DNA from: Podarcis liolepis
Taxonomy: Eukaryota
DNA: 64,000 nt
Direction: 5' to 3' (one strand)
NCBI GenBank assembly: GCA_965112155.1
Contig: OZ218099.1
The notes beneath the pieces were generated by a model, which was not told the origin of the DNA, did not search any database, and saw only the letters and a program-made list of their open reading frames with translations. Positions 58,837 to 64,000 of the stretch are shown here, piece after piece; the first letter of the stretch is position 1; each line of letters starts with the position of its first letter. The position numbers were made by a program, and so were the translations under genes.

Positions 58837-60016
58837 AAACAAACACAGTGGAATGTATGTACATACATGTCAACAAACCTTATTTTCCATAGTGCACCTT
58901 ACTTTAACTTTTGGTGAAAGTACATACACAGTACATTAGCAACAGCAATAGCTATTCCATAATGGGATGGAAATAATGAAGAGTCCTTATTCATGAAGCC
59001 TAAAGTTCTTTTATAAAAGAAAATCAGCAAAATTAATAATTCATTTTGAAGAAACTGCTGTTAATTTAATTGAGTCAAACATATCCTTAACTAAGTTTAG
59101 CTTTAGGCTACTGAAATATAAAAAGTAGCCTAATATTCCCCCCACATCAAAAAAAAAACACAAAAAACTAGGCCTGTGTGTAAGAGCTTTCGGGCTTTCT
59201 TATTTTAGTTTTCTTTAACTTCTTCAACTTCTTCATCTGTAGTATAATATGAAATAGTTCCACTCTACTGTCACAACACAGATACCACCAAAAATGGCTC
59301 CTTGTCTCATATTATCCTTAGTCAATCTATAGTATGTTAAAACATTTACCATTGTGTCTTAACACACTTCTCAGTGGCTGTCAGAAATGTACACACTCAT
59401 AGCTTGAGGGGAGAATGTCATGTGCTTAGTAGTTCTTTTGGCAGGTCAGCAAAAGTAATATTTGCTTACTGGAAAAAAAAATGTTTACTATGGCCTTAAG
59501 AAGAAACTTATATATCACTTTAAGCATGTACAGGAGCTCTGCATGTGCATCAAAATGCACAAAGCGATCTAAGTCAGTTTGACTATCTATTATGTTTCTA
59601 AACTGAGGTCTAGAGTCTCAGCAGGAACAAGTTAGCTTAATTATGATTAGTCCAGACAACCTGTCCCACATTTTGCCAGATTTTAAAAAGCATGAGTTTC
59701 CTATTTTTAATTTCCGGTATATTTTAATAGGTTCAGAAATGTTACCCTATAAATAACCCACCTGTGCTTTAACATGATTGCAGAAGCTGCACCACAACTC
59801 ATGAAATGAGTCAACATTAGTCTGATCAAAGTATATCAGAACTGGGCATATTGGTTTGCCCTGTTCCAGATGTATCTTGACTATTGATCTGCATCACAAC
59901 AGAATAGTTTGGGAGAAGAGAAATCGGAGAAGAGATAGGATAAAGCTGGATGTTGCTTTATCTCAAATCTAATGTTGCTAGTTTGGTTTGTGTGTAACCT
60001 CTCATTCCACTTTCAG

Positions 60017-60148
60017 TTCTGTACTGTTGAAGGATTCATAACAGCACTAGTGGATGAATTTCCAAGACTGTTACGCAGTCGGAGAGAAATCTTTATTGCT
60101 GGTGTGTGTGTCGTTTCCTATCTGATAGGACTGTCGAATATTACTCAG
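60017..60148 (+). CDS. SLC6A1: GAT-1 coding exon 10 (132 nt); gene continues beyond the window
   Basis: TTTCAG| [44 protein letters not shown] |GTAAAT; cumulative spliced CDS 1323 nt, in frame. Confidence 0.97.
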
Positions 60149-60696
60149 GTAAATACTATATTGGGAACTTTTTATCTCTAATTTGCTGTGGTCACATTTT
60201 CTACTAAACAGAATTATGAAGTAAGAGTCCTCTGTGGATTGCCTGTTAATTTAAGAAGGTGGGGAGACAGGAGAGATTCAGCTTTTCCTAAACCTTCAAA
60301 TGTCAATATCCTCTAAGGATTTGAGATTAGTATAATGCATATATAATATATAATACCTATATTTACTGGCATGTTGTCAGGCTTAATGCTACTCTTAAAA
60401 TCTTCAGCTTGTTCTATTAAATTGATTTACAACCACTGAGGATTCCATCTGTTTTGGTAACTCTTAGAAACCCTTGGATAGAAAAAAACACATAAAGGGT
60501 TGGTTATCATCAGCCAATGACATTGCTGCATTCAGGAACAATATTTGATGTAGTATGGAATGTAAGTAACACCAAAAAGCCATGGCAACATTTAAAACCA
60601 ATACACAAATGGTATATTTAAGGAATCTTTCTTTGTACAAGAGCAAGACATTGACGTATTTATTATTCCTTCCCTATCCTATTGTGAGTCTGCTTT

Positions 60697-60970
60697 GAAT
60701 TACAGAATTGTAGAATTGCAACTAACCCAACCCCCTGCAATGCAGGAATCTCAATTAAAGCATCCCTGAGAGATGGTCACCCAACCTCTGCTTAAAAAGC
60801 TCCAAGGAAGGAGAGTCCACCACCTTACAAGGGAGTTCATTCCACTGTCAAACAGCTCTTACCATCAGAATATTCTTCCTGATGCTAAGTTGGAATCTCC
60901 TTTCTTGTAACTTGACTCCACTGGTTCAGGTCCTACCCTCTGGAACTGGAGAACATCTTCCATGTGACAG
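60697..60970 (-). mobile_element. Degenerate CR1 3' fragment, interrupted by the Gypsy element
   Basis: CCAACCCCCTGCAATGCAGGAATC..CTCTGCTTAAAA..GGAGAGTCCACCACC..TTCCACTGTCAAACAGCTCTTAC; similar to the 31063 copy. Confidence 0.75.
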
Positions 60971-61436
60971 AACCTCGAGCTCAACTATTTACTCTTATCA
61001 ATAAATATGGAATTATCCCTATACCACCTGTGAGGGTTTGATTAGCTGCTTGTGCGTGAAAACGTGCTCCCTCAGAGTTTGTGCGACCCCACAAACCTCC
61101 GTGTGTGACGGAGCTCCTCAGACATGTCTGCTCTAGTCACTAGTAGAGTCCGACAGTGGCTGTCTGCGGAAACGTTTCCAGCAAAGAAGTTCCTTAACGG
61201 AAACGCGTCTCCTGGACTCACGGCGTGACAGTTTCCTGCGAGGTGTGGGTCTCCCTATGGGAGACTCCGATACCTCCCCACTGTTCTCGCTGGAAGCCTC
61301 CCTGAGCCCTCCCTCCTGCTCGCATTCCCTCAGAGACCCACTCCTCCCCCTGCTGGTCCCTGCTTCAGCAGTTGAGTCTCTTTCATCCTGCCTGAGTCCC
61401 TCCACCACCTGATGCTCTGATGGCAGTTCCCTGACA
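60963..61436 (-). repeat. 3' LTR of the Gypsy element (outer end approximate)
   Basis: Minus strand begins TGTCAGG directly after the PPT; AGTAAA signal at ~60987-60992; ends near ..TGTCACA, overlapping CR1-like sequence. Confidence 0.7.
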
Positions 61437-64000
61437 TCCATCTCCCCTCCAGGGCCCCCCTCACCCCCTCCCAATTCCTCCCCCCTGGGAGGTGAAGGGC
61501 TAAAACCCCGAAACGAATCTTCCTCATCTTCTGACGTCTCGAACAATTCTCTCCATCGATCGTCGTCCTGGCCAGCTGAATCCTCCTCCTCTTCAGAATC
61601 TGGGAACCCCTCCAACTCCTCTTCCTCGTCGGTGGTGGCAAAGTATTCCCTTCGGAACCTCGCTACAGGCTGAGGTTTACGTGGGAACCTCTGATGAAAA
61701 GTCTCTATTAAAACCTCGTCATTGACATCCTCTGCCCTAACCCAGGTGTTTTCCGACTCCGGTTCCCCTTCCCACATTACCAAATACTCTACTTGATCTC
61801 CCTTCCACCTGGAATCGAGGATCTCCGCTACATGGTAGCTGTGTTCCTTCTCCTCCATTGCTGGTCCCCTAGTGACCCTCCCCTCACTGTCTCCTCTATA
61901 CGGTGACAGCAACGACCTGTGAAAAACTGGGTGCAGCTTCATGTGGTTCGGTAACCGGAGCCTGAAAGCCACTGGATTGACCTGCTGTATGACTTCAAAC
62001 GGACCCAGCCTTTTGGGTCTTAATTTCTTACACCCTCCTTTGAATGGCAACCCTTGGGTTGACAGCCACACCTGGTCCCCCACCCTGATGCTTTCACCTT
62101 CCCTTCTGTTTTTGTCTGCCTGCCTCTTATATTCCTCCTTAGCCCTGTTTAAATTGAGTTGGAGCTGGCGATGGATCGCTTCCATTTCTTCCACGAACTG
62201 TTCTGCAGCTGGAACGCTCCAGTTCTCCCCCTCCCCCCCTGGGAAGGCTCTGGGATGGCACCCGTGATTAGCCAAAAAGGGGCTCATCCCCGTGGACACG
62301 TTCTCTGCATTGTTGTAGGCAAATTCTGCCAACGCCAACTTCTCCACCCAATCATTCTCTCTGTCATTAACATAACACCTCAAATATTGTTGGAGAACCC
62401 CATTTGCTCTTTCCGCCTGCCCGTTGGTTTCAGGATGACGGGCCGTCGAGAAATTAACCTCTACATGCAGTAAGCTCATGAGCTTCCTCCAGAACCTGGA
62501 AGTAAATTGTTTCCCTCGGTCTGAAACCACCCTCAAGGGGGCGCCATGCAACCTAAACACATTCTCTACAAACAATTTGGCGGTTTCTTCTGCTGTAACC
62601 GCATGTGAGCAGGCTATGAAGTGGGCCATTTTAGTTAACAGGTCTACTACAACCATGATGGCTGTTTTCCCTCTAGACCTTGGCAGATCAGTCATGAAAT
62701 CTATTGCCACTGCTTCCCACGGTCTCTCAGGTGTGGGCAGTGGTTCTAATAAACCAGCCGGCGCCTGCCTCTCCCCCTTGGCTCTTTGGCATTGTTCACA
62801 CCCTCTCACATACTCCCGCACATCTTCCCTGACCTTGGGCCACCAAAATTCCCTGGTAACCAGCCACATGGTTTTGTGTTGCCCAAAGTGCCCTGCTGTG
62901 GGGCTATCGTGCAGCTGCTTGAGTACCTTCTCCCTCAATTCCCCTTCAGGTATATATAACGCTCCCTTATAATACAATGCCCCATTTCTCTCCTCAAAAC
63001 CACCGGATTTGTCTTCCTCCCCTCTGAGATCCCTGAGTTTCCCCTGGGCGTATGCATCCTGCACCGTACCCTCTACCAATTCCCTTTGCCCCACCAAAGT
63101 CGCCCCACACACCCAGCGGTCCTCTGGAATGATATGGGTTTCTTCGGGTGCTCCCTCCCCCTCCAAATATTCAGGTTTGCGTGAGAGAGCGTCCGCCCTA
63201 ACATTCTCTGGGCCTGGCACATAACAAATCTCAAAGTTAAATTTGGAGAACTCTTGGGCCCATCTCAACTGCCTTTGGTTGAGCACTCGCGCCGTTCTCC
63301 AGTACTCTAGATTTTTATGGTCCGTGCACACCTGCACTTTATGTTGTGCACCAACTAGCAGATGCCTCCATCTCCGGAACGCCTCATGAATAGCAAGCAG
63401 TTCTCGGTCGTACACCGTGTAGTTCCTCTCGGATTTGTTCAGCTTCCGCGAGAAGAAGGCACACGGACGCCACTCTGACTCCTCCTTCCCCGGCTGCAGA
63501 AGAAGCACCGCCCCTATGGCTCTGTCAGATGCGTCTGTTTCAACCCTTAGCTTCTTTCGTAAATCCACATGCAGAAGTTGTTCTTCAGAGGCGAAGGCCC
63601 TTTTCAGTTCCTCAAACGCTCGCTCCGCCTCCGCCGTCCATACAAACTTCTTTTTACTGCTGAGACAGTCAGTGATGGGCGCCGTCAGATGGGCGAAGTT
63701 GCGGATGAACTTACGATAAAAGTTTCCAAACCCTAGGAACCTCTGCACATCCTTCTTGGTTTTGGGTGTTTTCCATTCCAGCACTGCCTGTACCTTGCCG
63801 GGATCCATGGCCAATCCCTTGTCTGACAGGCGGTACCCCAGGAATTCCACCTCCTTGGTATGGAACCGACACTTCTCCAGTTTGACCCACAGCCTGTTGG
63901 CTTGCAGTCTGCTCAACACTTCTCTGACGTCTCTCACATGTTGCTCCTCATTCTCAGAATACACCAACACATCATCTAGAAAGGCAACGCAATTCTTGTA
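61133..64000 (-). CDS. Gypsy Pol (partial RT, RNase H, integrase, chromodomain, acidic/basic tail); open at window edge
   Basis: RT FLDD (63971-63982); RNase H ETDASD, RELLA, TDHKNL, ADALSR; IN HDSPTAGH..CEQC, IDF, SDRG, AER; GPF motif; chromodomain ~61673-61837; no stops or frameshifts in about 955 codons. Confidence 0.95.
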   Translation of the reverse strand, partial: YKNCVAFLDDVLVYSENEEQHVRDVREVLSRLQANRLWVKLEKCRFHTKEVEFLGYRLSDKGLAMDPGKVQAVLEWKTPKTKKDVQRFLGFGNFYRKFIRNFAHLTAPITDCLSSKKKFVWTAEAERAFEELKRAFASEEQLLHVDLRKKLRVETDASDRAIGAVLLLQPGKEESEWRPCAFFSRKLNKSERNYTVYDRELLAIHEAFRRWRHLLVGAQHKVQVCTDHKNLEYWRTARVLNQRQLRWAQEFSKFNFEICYVPGPENVRADALSRKPEYLEGEGAPEETHIIPEDRWVCGATLVGQRELVEGTVQDAYAQGKLRDLRGEEDKSGGFEERNGALYYKGALYIPEGELREKVLKQLHDSPTAGHFGQHKTMWLVTREFWWPKVREDVREYVRGCEQCQRAKGERQAPAGLLEPLPTPERPWEAVAIDFMTDLPRSRGKTAIMVVVDLLTKMAHFIACSHAVTAEETAKLFVENVFRLHGAPLRVVSDRGKQFTSRFWRKLMSLLHVEVNFSTARHPETNGQAERANGVLQQYLRCYVNDRENDWVEKLALAEFAYNNAENVSTGMSPFLANHGCHPRAFPGGEGENWSVPAAEQFVEEMEAIHRQLQLNLNRAKEEYKRQADKNRREGESIRVGDQVWLSTQGLPFKGGCKKLRPKRLGPFEVIQQVNPVAFRLRLPNHMKLHPVFHRSLLSPYRGDSEGRVTRGPAMEEKEHSYHVAEILDSRWKGDQVEYLVMWEGEPESENTWVRAEDVNDEVLIETFHQRFPRKPQPVARFRREYFATTDEEEELEGFPDSEEEEDSAGQDDDRWRELFETSEDEEDSFRGFSPSPPRGEELGGGEGGPGGEMDVRELPSEHQVVEGLRQDERDSTAEAGTSRGRSGSLRECEQEGGLREASSENSGEVSESPIGRPTPRRKLSRRESRRRVSVKELLCWKRFRRQPLSDSTSD
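61437..61450 (-). other. Polypurine tract
   Basis: GGAGGGGAGATGGA immediately 5' of the LTR's TG on the minus strand. Confidence 0.75.

Follow-up and report, generated by a model that had tools for sequence, protein, structure and literature searches.

The window analysed here is a stretch of 64,000 nucleotides of Podarcis liolepis DNA, which is without N stretches. On the minus strand, at the end of the window, lies the open reading frame of a Ty3/Gypsy chromovirus-type Pol, whose features are listed in Table 1. The stop codon of this frame occupies 61133-61135 and its 5' part lies beyond the window. Within the window the frame contains the end of the reverse transcriptase (RT), RNase H, the integrase, an SH3-like domain, a chromodomain and a tail of 184 amino acids. 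The Pfam domains matched along it are RVT_1, RNase H, Integrase_H2C2, rve, SH3_Tf2-1 and Chromo, and this order of RT, RNase H and integrase with a chromodomain at the C-terminal end is the one that defines chromoviruses. The intronic location named in the first-pass annotation found no confirmation in the five other long open reading frames of the window, which had neither an exon nor a Pfam match. No second copy of the element and no LTR was found elsewhere in the window.

Table 1. Features of the Pol frame and its 3' end in the window (aa, residue of the Pol frame).
Feature	Position	Strand	Remarks
Ty3/Gypsy chromovirus-type Pol ORF	61133-64000	minus	955 codons, open frame leaving the window end
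Integrase zinc-binding domain (aa 354-408) and catalytic core rve (aa 426-523)	62432-62941	minus	PF17921, 1.8e-23; PF00665, 1.1e-10
Tf2-1-like SH3 domain of integrase (aa 641-702)	61895-62080	minus	PF24626, 3.2e-19; with GPF motif
Chromodomain (aa 722-771)	61688-61837	minus	PF00385, 1e-11
TIM-like motif 1 (aa 782-799)	61604-61657	minus	FRREYFATTDEEEELEGF; anchor Phe, 8-residue T/acidic linker, LEGF
TIM-like motif 2 (aa 816-833)	61502-61555	minus	WRELFETSEDEEDSFRGF; anchor Phe, 9-residue acidic S/T linker, FRGF
Purine-rich tract, probable polypurine tract	61441-61488	minus	75-90% purine in 20-nt windows
Probable start of the 3' LTR	61029-61436	minus	TGTCAG at 61436; Pol reads through to stop at 61133
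Basic C-terminal module	61163-61243	minus	PRRKLSRRESRRRVSVKELLCWKRFRR; kept in P0005 and P0121, partly in family D

The two tail motifs

The tail carries two motifs that resemble the TND-interacting motif (TIM) of cellular proteins. The first-pass annotation had given their sequences and positions and had placed them after the chromodomain; translation of the two minus-strand intervals in Table 1 reproduces both peptides, which follow the Pfam Chromo match in the same Pol frame. It had further claimed that the second copy fits (E/D)x(E/D)xFxGF exactly and that the acidic linkers contain CK2-type sites. Both claims hold, as motif 2 reads EEDSFRGF, with FRGF preceded by acidic residues and D at position -2, and each of the two linkers has two S/T-x-x-D/E sites.

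As published, a TIM has three parts: an obligate helix with F, V, L or I; an acidic linker of 8-16 residues, in which D/E/G/S/T abound and which CK2 phosphorylates; and FxGF. TIMs frequently occur several in series. The related consensus for the IBD-binding motif (IBM) is D/ExExFxGF together with an upstream motif that has a conserved Phe. Conservation of the FxGF contact with a LEDGF-type domain reaches to Drosophila JIL-1/JASPer. The lizard tail shows FxGF, acidic residues before it, a predicted short, amphipathic helix upstream with an anchor Phe at its end, a linker and a disordered surrounding, and the tandem TIM-like layout proposed in the first pass agrees with the published arrangement of helix, acidic S/T linker and FxGF. 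Judged from this likeness, there is about an even chance that the tail carries two tandem motifs of the TIM, or LEDGF IBD-binding, type which tether the integrase to LEDGF/HRP2.

A direct alignment of the tail motifs with IBM peptides is not possible because the motifs are too short for phmmer or hmmsearch. PDB sequences gave no matches, either to the 70-aa motif region in phmmer (E up to 10) or to the two-motif profile in hmmsearch. The scores of an ESM Atlas search with the motif region were at most 0.78 and are uninformative. With regard to a possible capture of the motif from a host gene, 1.84 billion representatives were scanned by HMMER with the chromodomain and tail. All matches were chromodomain or retroelement proteins, the motif being too short to detect in this way. 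No relatives of the element were found in metagenome or viral contigs, and pieces of it are present in two sequencing runs that are guessed to be RNA. In the literature, no earlier description of TIM-like motifs in such an integrase tail was found.

Conservation and chance expectation

The motif-bearing lineages form a single Podarcis clade (SH-aLRT 100), and the path length in the tree from the window element to family D is 1.2 substitutions per site. Over this distance the tail flanks around the motifs have become unalignable between lineages and the rest of the tail has diverged. Only four tail positions have the same residue in 9 or more of the 10 lineage representatives, and all belong to motif 1: the anchor F (9/10), the linker T (9/10), the G (10/10) and the final F (9/10). 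In an alignment of 14 sequences, F72, T75, G83 and F84 of the tail are invariant or nearly so, as are P58, P61 and P63, just past the chromodomain. The first-pass annotation had proposed to compare the conservation of FxGF and the upstream Phe with that of the flanking disordered tail, and the motif stands this comparison: for ten lineages, the mean conservation is 0.70 at eight pre-defined key positions versus 0.41 at the other 55, with a permutation p of about 1e-4.

The spacing from the anchor F to FxGF is also nearly fixed, at 8 or 9 residues in all 24 listed motif instances from 17 clade proteins, which is the lower bound of the published range. In these instances the linkers contain 4-7 acidic and 2-5 S/T residues, family D excepted. 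For motif 2, six of eight lineages have Phe as the anchor and family D has Trp, and an invariant Trp (8/8) stands four residues before it. The forms of FxGF are FVGF and FRGF in P0121, FEGF and FRGF in P0004, FVGF in P0122, FEGF in P0124, FIGF in P0175, FLGF in P0005 and FQGF in family D. The strict pattern seen in motif 2 of the window element occurs also in P0001, P0004, P0121, P0122, P0124 and P0175, and some copies have S/T instead of an acidic residue at -2. When compared with the cellular TIM consensus, two departures are found. In motif 1, the first Phe of FxGF is replaced by Leu in the window element, and by Leu or Met throughout the element's own subfamily, whereas this motif reads FEGF, FVGF, FIGF or FQGF in P0004, P0121, P0122, P0124, P0175 and family D; family D has an S/T-rich, non-acidic linker with no acidic residue before FxGF, and its second motif is not clear. 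In P0005, motif 1 is lost.

To evaluate the chance expectation, the 184-aa tail was shuffled 200,000 times with its composition preserved. D/ExD/ExFxGF, the strict pattern, appears in 0.19% of these shuffles. The full two-part pattern (hydrophobic-F, acidic linker, (F/L/M)xGF), a post hoc definition drawn after the data were seen, appears once in 0.064% of the shuffles and twice in none. Among 253 related proteins outside the clade, with 177,611 residues in total, the strict pattern has 0 matches. Because of this rarity in shuffles, the lack of matches outside the clade and the position-specific conservation within it, the motifs, on these sequence comparisons, are no chance product of an acidic tail, and we take the motif to be real and conserved.

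These figures bear on the reading that the motifs have no function at the protein level and are a by-product of acidic low complexity, a trace of recent descent, or the result of a nucleotide constraint near the polypurine tract. All named relatives come from one host species, Podarcis muralis, and the lineages therefore share host and ancestry, as this reading would have it. Against it, the pattern is rare in shuffles and missing from the non-clade residues, and the motif persists across the whole depth of the clade amid neighbours and lengths that change freely. Moreover, the conserved positions are isolated residues separated by variable ones, a pattern consistent with protein-level selection. 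In favour of the reading, the peptide GGPGGE.DV of the tail is probably conserved for nucleic-acid reasons (polypurine tract, LTR end). On balance we consider it very improbable.

The 3' end of the element

Both motifs fall between the chromodomain and the purine-rich tract, which is probably the polypurine tract; this call is an inferred one because the 5' LTR falls beyond the window. The tract also encodes GGGEGGPGGE. This peptide is conserved throughout the motif-bearing clade, and most relatives end in a similar (R/E)GGxV. Likeness to other copies ends at 61029, with loose ends at 61028, and the summed contig depth is 3-5x higher over 61033-61476 than over 61477-61698, which is weak evidence for an LTR. 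The last ~100 amino acids of the tail are probably encoded by the LTR. They include the basic C-terminal module, for which a nuclear localisation signal, a contact to nucleic acid or the nucleosome, and an LTR cis-element are candidates. The 3' LTR of the window copy is interrupted and breaks off at 61029, and this copy is uninformative on target choice.

The 955-codon frame is intact and the UniRef name of its relatives is 'Gypsy retrotransposon integrase-like protein 1', as would be expected if the ORF were a domesticated, GIN1-like host gene whose motifs serve the host. We regard this as hardly credible. The relatives combine protease, RT, RNase H and integrase, and they fall into clusters of up to 24 members in Podarcis and 366 in Anolis. 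Several divergent subfamilies exist within one genome, and contig pieces of 85-100% identity number in the thousands and come from several organisms. The motifs are also followed by a polypurine-like tract and a high-copy segment that resembles an LTR.

Chromodomain cage

The aromatic cage was located by alignment with Drosophila HP1 (1KNA; Y24, W45 and Y48). In the window element the cage residues are Y722, W743 and E746, and this Y-W-E has Glu at the third site, where HP1 has Tyr48; the H3K9me-reading Y-W-Y cage of group I chromoviruses is thus absent from it. About 96 of the 113 relatives have a full aromatic cage (YWY, FWY and similar). In the motif-bearing lineages the third cage position is non-aromatic and the first is also lost in most of them, giving N/S-W-E and N-W-A, and in family D N-R/K-T, with one member N-K-F. 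Loss of the cage is confined almost wholly to this clade. Because the clade that gained the motif is the one without an aromatic cage, these sequences suggest a targeting switch from heterochromatin to a host tether. Both changes fall on a single branch, and their association therefore counts as one event (n = 1).

Predicted structure of the tail

AlphaFold2 predicts the tail to be intrinsically disordered, with a pLDDT of 45-55 versus more than 90 for the chromodomain. The only helices predicted in the motif-bearing stretch are VARFRREYF (61640-61666) and RWREL (61544-61558), which lie directly upstream of the linkers of motif 1 and motif 2, respectively. Their pLDDT is only about 50, a low confidence, and the alignment used was a shallow one of 14 sequences. 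One further helix, of 4 residues, is predicted in the tail near its C-terminal end.

Docking of the tail on the chromodomain of the same molecule was also considered. It would belong to a reading in which the motifs regulate the integrase itself, through CK2-dependent import, stability, multimerisation or contact with the cage-less chromodomain. The CK2-type sites are conserved, including the linker Thr of motif 1, and the conserved basic C-terminal module could pair with the acidic part. The AlphaFold2 model has no confident contact between tail and chromodomain, with the tail pLDDT at about 50, and the invariant G-F and the fixed two-pocket spacing are left unexplained. Self-regulation is therefore, in our opinion, improbable.

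Proposed mechanism and choice of partner

The overall proposal, to which we give slightly less than an even chance, is that a lizard chromovirus clade has swapped H3K9me reading for tandem TIM mimics, with which it hijacks LEDGF/HRP2 or else a sister TND protein. Once in the nucleus, an integrase bound in the intasome would use its disordered tail to dock on the TND-type IBD of LEDGF/p75 or HRP2, where two hydrophobic pockets and a basic patch would provide the docking surfaces. Phosphorylation of the linker would probably strengthen the contact between tail and IBD. Binding could gain from avidity, since each integrase has two motifs and an intasome contains several integrases. The PWWP domain of LEDGF/HRP2 reads H3K36me2/3, and therefore insertions would be steered to transcribed gene bodies. 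It is from sequence that we infer LEDGF/HRP2 as the partner, the phosphorylation of the linker and the targeting outcome.

A selected short linear motif could also have been kept for a partner other than LEDGF/HRP2, since conservation and fixed spacing show constraint without naming what is bound. The candidates are the other TND proteins IWS1, TFIIS, Elongin A, MED26 and PPP1R10, as well as histones H2A-H2B, contacted as they are by acidic-aromatic motifs of chaperones, and a protein of the element's own. Acidic-aromatic motifs can bind partners other than TNDs, and this tail, with its strong acidity and its aromatic anchors, resembles many histone-binding regions. Acidic histone-binding stretches, on the other hand, need no Gly-Phe pair at a fixed spacing. 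Within the TND family, TIMs bind several TNDs, with selectivity set by details, according to a review. The same review points back to LEDGF/HRP2: FxGF is optional for TIMs generally, yet all known partners of LEDGF and HRP2 carry it and cannot do without it. What the lizard clade retains is precisely F...FxGF, together with the acidic residues at -2 and -4. We judge a different partner unlikely, though it deserves serious weight.

Comparison with known systems

The cellular IBM/TIM proteins JPO2/CDCA7L, MLL1/KMT2A, IWS1, POGZ, MED1 and ASK/DBF4, and JIL-1 of Drosophila, were compared via the published definition and have the same layout, often in tandem. They differ in that the cellular motifs sit on host transcription factors, whereas the lizard motifs sit on the integrase of a mobile element. 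The proposed partner and outcome are those of HIV-1 integrase, namely tethering via the IBD to H3K36me-marked transcription units. The first-pass annotation had called the lizard element convergent with HIV-1, and this stands for the proposed host partner only. The interface is not shared, as HIV-1 integrase binds LEDGF through the folded dimer interface of its catalytic core whereas the lizard element has a linear motif. According to a review, LEDGF does not bind the integrases of other, non-lentiviral retroviral genera.

In mechanistic terms, the proposal is nearer to the cellular IBM partners and to the integrase tail of the gammaretrovirus MLV, its closest analogue, which binds the ET domain of BET proteins. 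The disordered MLV tail, C-terminal to the integrase domains, contacts this host chromatin reader through a short conserved motif that is dispensable for catalysis. The MLV motif is different (W-x-Phi...PL-b-Phi-b-Phi-xR), as are its BET partners and its targets, which are promoters and enhancers. The yeast LTR retrotransposon Ty5 is tethered to the chromatin protein Sir4 by a motif of 6 residues at the C-terminal end of its integrase. This targeting motif of Ty5 is phospho-regulated. Ty5 differs from the lizard element in being a Ty1/copia element, in targeting heterochromatin and in the sequence of its motif, which is unrelated. A review on integrase-tail tethering (MLV-BET, Ty5-Sir4) predicts further cases. 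The lizard element, too, has a conserved short motif in a disordered tail past the integrase domains, and a new variant of such tethering is a plausible reading of its sequence.

The group I chromoviruses, such as MAGGY and Sushi, use the chromodomain for targeting. They share the Ty3/Gypsy Pol backbone with a C-terminal chromodomain, and the nearest relatives of the lizard clade keep the YWY-type cage of this group. The clade itself departs from group I in two respects: the third cage residue is absent, and usually the first too, and a motif-bearing insert of 60-100 amino acids lies between the chromodomain and the polypurine tract.

To our knowledge, tethering by LEDGF has been known only from lentiviruses, via a folded interface. 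If the proposal is true, the lizard element would be the first retroelement outside the lentiviruses that uses the LEDGF axis, and no mobile element before it would have been found to mimic a TIM; the TND-TIM network would be shown to be open to parasitic mimicry. The motif pair would represent a compact "gene-body targeting tag" of natural origin, to be compared in its logic with HIV. The cage-intact sister families, of the P0023 and P0025 types, and the motif-bearing families would also offer a within-genome contrast for chromatin-niche switching. For the lizards, it would mean a new route by which a retroelement aims its insertions at active genes, and it would bear on the accumulation of some lizard LTR elements in or near genes.

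Integrase tail and the two motifs

The coordinates of the element and its adjoining repeat are summarized in the table. The G+C content of the element is 0.46-0.51 compared with 0.35-0.45 in the surrounding DNA (60001-64000 versus the rest of the window), and the GC skew of the element region is strongly negative on the plus strand. Pfam domains follow in the Pol frame in the order end of RVT_1, RNase H, Integrase_H2C2, rve, Tf2-1-like SH3 and chromodomain, beyond which there is a tail of 184 residues, rich in E, R, S, G and D. The first-pass annotation had read two peptides resembling TND-interacting or LEDGF IBD-binding motifs (TIM/IBM) after the chromodomain; both were exact on translation and are located in this tail.

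Features of the Ty3/Gypsy element and the adjoining repeat
Feature	Position	Strand	Remarks
Ty3/Gypsy Pol open frame	61133-64000	minus	955 codons, continues past window end
Chromodomain	61688-61837 (aa 722-771)	minus	Pfam
Motif 1	61657-61604	minus	FRREYFATTDEEEELEGF
Motif 2	61555-61502	minus	WRELFETSEDEEDSFRGF
Purine-rich tract	61488-61441	minus	75-90% purine, just past motif 2
TGTCAG	at 61436	minus	after purine-rich tract
Putative Pol read-through into 3' LTR	61133-61436	minus	about 100 codons
Basic module ending LLCWKRFRR	61163-61243	minus	probably LTR-encoded
SINE-like repeat	60727-61028		very high copy, adjoins LTR break point

According to a review, a TIM consists of an obligate short helix anchoring via F, V, L or I, an acidic linker of 8-16 residues that is rich in D, E, G, S and T and CK2-phosphorylated, and an optional FxGF, which every known partner of LEDGF and HRP2 has and requires; in several proteins, two or three TIMs are arranged in series. 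Other papers give the consensus D/ExExFxGF with an upstream helical motif containing a conserved Phe. The contact between FxGF and the LEDGF domain is kept as far as Drosophila. The lizard motifs have every sequence feature of this class. An AlphaFold2 model from a 14-sequence alignment was confident for the chromodomain and gave a disordered tail (pLDDT 45-55), where short helices (VARFRREYF and RWREL) were predicted at low confidence immediately before each of the two linkers; the sole other tail helix, of 4 residues, is near the C-terminal end.

Relatives and motif conservation

A word search with the tail as query gave three close Podarcis-type proteins, and querying with the integrase-chromodomain region gave 1,278 relatives, 120 of which were retrieved. 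HMMER with the chromodomain and tail against 1.84 billion representatives added the proteins P0121, P0122, P0124 and P0175, the last three having Podarcis muralis as UniRef source, which makes a lacertid lizard the most likely host. Near-identical sequence occurs in the runs of about ten organisms, mostly as many contig pieces, and the element family is therefore multicopy; that the ORF is a domesticated host gene is extremely unlikely. One NCBI model of Podarcis muralis (P0006, "vomeronasal type-2 receptor 26-like") joins an integrase fragment from this family, at 73% identity, to V2R receptor domains, so that a copy with matching orientation lies within or adjoining a V2R gene. This is one further genic insertion, a single anecdotal case.

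In a quick IQ-TREE analysis of 115 integrase-chromodomain rows, the window subfamily, the related proteins P0004 and P0005, and family D (P0010-P0017) formed one exclusive clade (SH-aLRT 100), with a path of 1.2 substitutions per site from the window element to family D; the next relatives are Anolis and two other squamate families (support 87). Chromoviral relatives mostly stop 0-30 residues past the chromodomain. A long insert is present there in one group only, and every lineage of that group carries a motif: both in the window subfamily, P0004 and P0121; motif 1 without motif 2 in P0122 and P0175; motif 1 and a second helix-and-acidic stretch without FxGF in P0124; motif 2 without motif 1 in P0005; and FDDWLFTPTLSASTFQGF at the motif 1 position in family D. 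Within the tail, identity in 9 or more of the 10 lineage representatives is confined to motif 1, at its anchor Phe, a Thr in the linker, and the Gly and Phe of xGF. The first residue of the motif 1 xGF is Phe in 7 of the 10 lineages, and the window's subfamily alone has Leu or Met there. Across the 24 listed instances, anchor Phe and FxGF are always 8 or 9 residues apart, whereas the stretches between and beyond the motifs differ among lineages in length and content.

The first-pass annotation had suggested testing whether FxGF and the upstream Phe are conserved above the rest of the tail, and they are: mean conservation was 0.70 at the eight key positions it had named and 0.41 at the other 55 (permutation p ~1e-4). 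The lineages are not independent, although one tree is common to all columns. Shuffling the tail 200,000 times at constant composition gave the strict [DE]x[DE]xFxGF in 0.19% of trials. For a more complete pattern (hydrophobic-F, acidic linker, [FLM]xGF), defined post hoc with the data already seen, a single occurrence was found in 0.064% and a double occurrence never. The cleaner control, in our view, is the count outside the clade, where the strict pattern had 0 matches in 253 related Pol/chromodomain proteins (177,611 residues). Beside these figures, motifs without protein-level function are very unlikely. In Anolis carolinensis, two relatives with an intact chromodomain cage (P0020, P0022) have DIVMPDEEENLGF in the LTR-encoded tail, an acidic stretch and xLGF without the first Phe, which may be the motif in weak form or an independent counterpart of it.

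Probable polypurine tract and LTR

The purine-rich tract encodes GGGEGGPGGE.DVR, a peptide conserved across the clade; most relatives end in a similar (R/E)GGxV(R). We interpret the tract as the polypurine tract followed by the start of the 3' LTR; about 100 Pol codons would therefore extend into the LTR, and both motifs would be in the internal region, outside it. Summed contig depth is 3-5x higher over 61033-61476 than over 61477-61698, which weakly favours this boundary. GGPGGE.DV is probably conserved for reasons at the nucleic-acid level. An ending of the form (R/K/E)-G-G/D-x-V-(R), matched by GGPGGEMDVR in the window, is common to many vertebrate chromoviral Pol proteins (P0020, P0023, P0025, P0057, P0060, P0063, P0064, P0075, P0076, P0087, P0092, P0100 and P0113), and this recurring ending probably reflects translation of the polypurine tract and LTR terminus and is not a protein motif.

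Tails of 106-125 aa past this peptide also exist in Anolis P0020 and P0022, in P0023 and in P0025, and read-through may be a trait common to this squamate clade. The LLCWKRFRR module is kept in P0001, P0002 and P0121, as GLLCWKR in P0005 and loosely in family D (RKRWSKARILSW). The similarity of other copies ends at 61028/61029 beside the SINE-like repeat, and hence the 3' LTR of the window copy is interrupted; the repeat, whose contig depth is 10-50x the element's in all four runs examined, probably interrupted or replaced the remaining LTR. The window edge also cuts this copy.

Chromodomain cage and proposed integration targeting

Integrase tail tethers are known for MLV-BET and Ty5-Sir4, as noted in an integration-targeting review that predicts further cases. 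A full-text literature search of incomplete coverage found no description of an LTR-retrotransposon integrase with TIM-type motifs. In our preferred reading, held at about even odds, the tandem TIM/IBM mimics would dock on the IBD of LEDGF or HRP2, aided by CK2 phosphorylation, and the docked integrase would steer integration to H3K36me-marked gene bodies. That the motifs are a regulatory switch for the integrase itself is unlikely.

Aligned to Drosophila HP1, the window chromodomain has Y-W-E at cage positions Y24, W45 and Y48. The aromatic cage is complete in about 96 of 113 relatives; the third residue is non-aromatic in all motif-bearing lineages, the first is also lost in most, and all three are gone in most members of family D. 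According to a Beta vulgaris paper, group I chromodomains (YWY) read H3K9me, and the group II type, without the first and third aromatics, is known only from plants; the same absence (N-W-E and similar) is seen in P0003-P0005, P0121, P0122 and P0124. A selected motif that binds some other TND protein, or a histone, is a less probable alternative to LEDGF/HRP2 docking. Cage loss and motif gain fall on the same tree branch as one event, and this would fit a switched mode of targeting in the clade.
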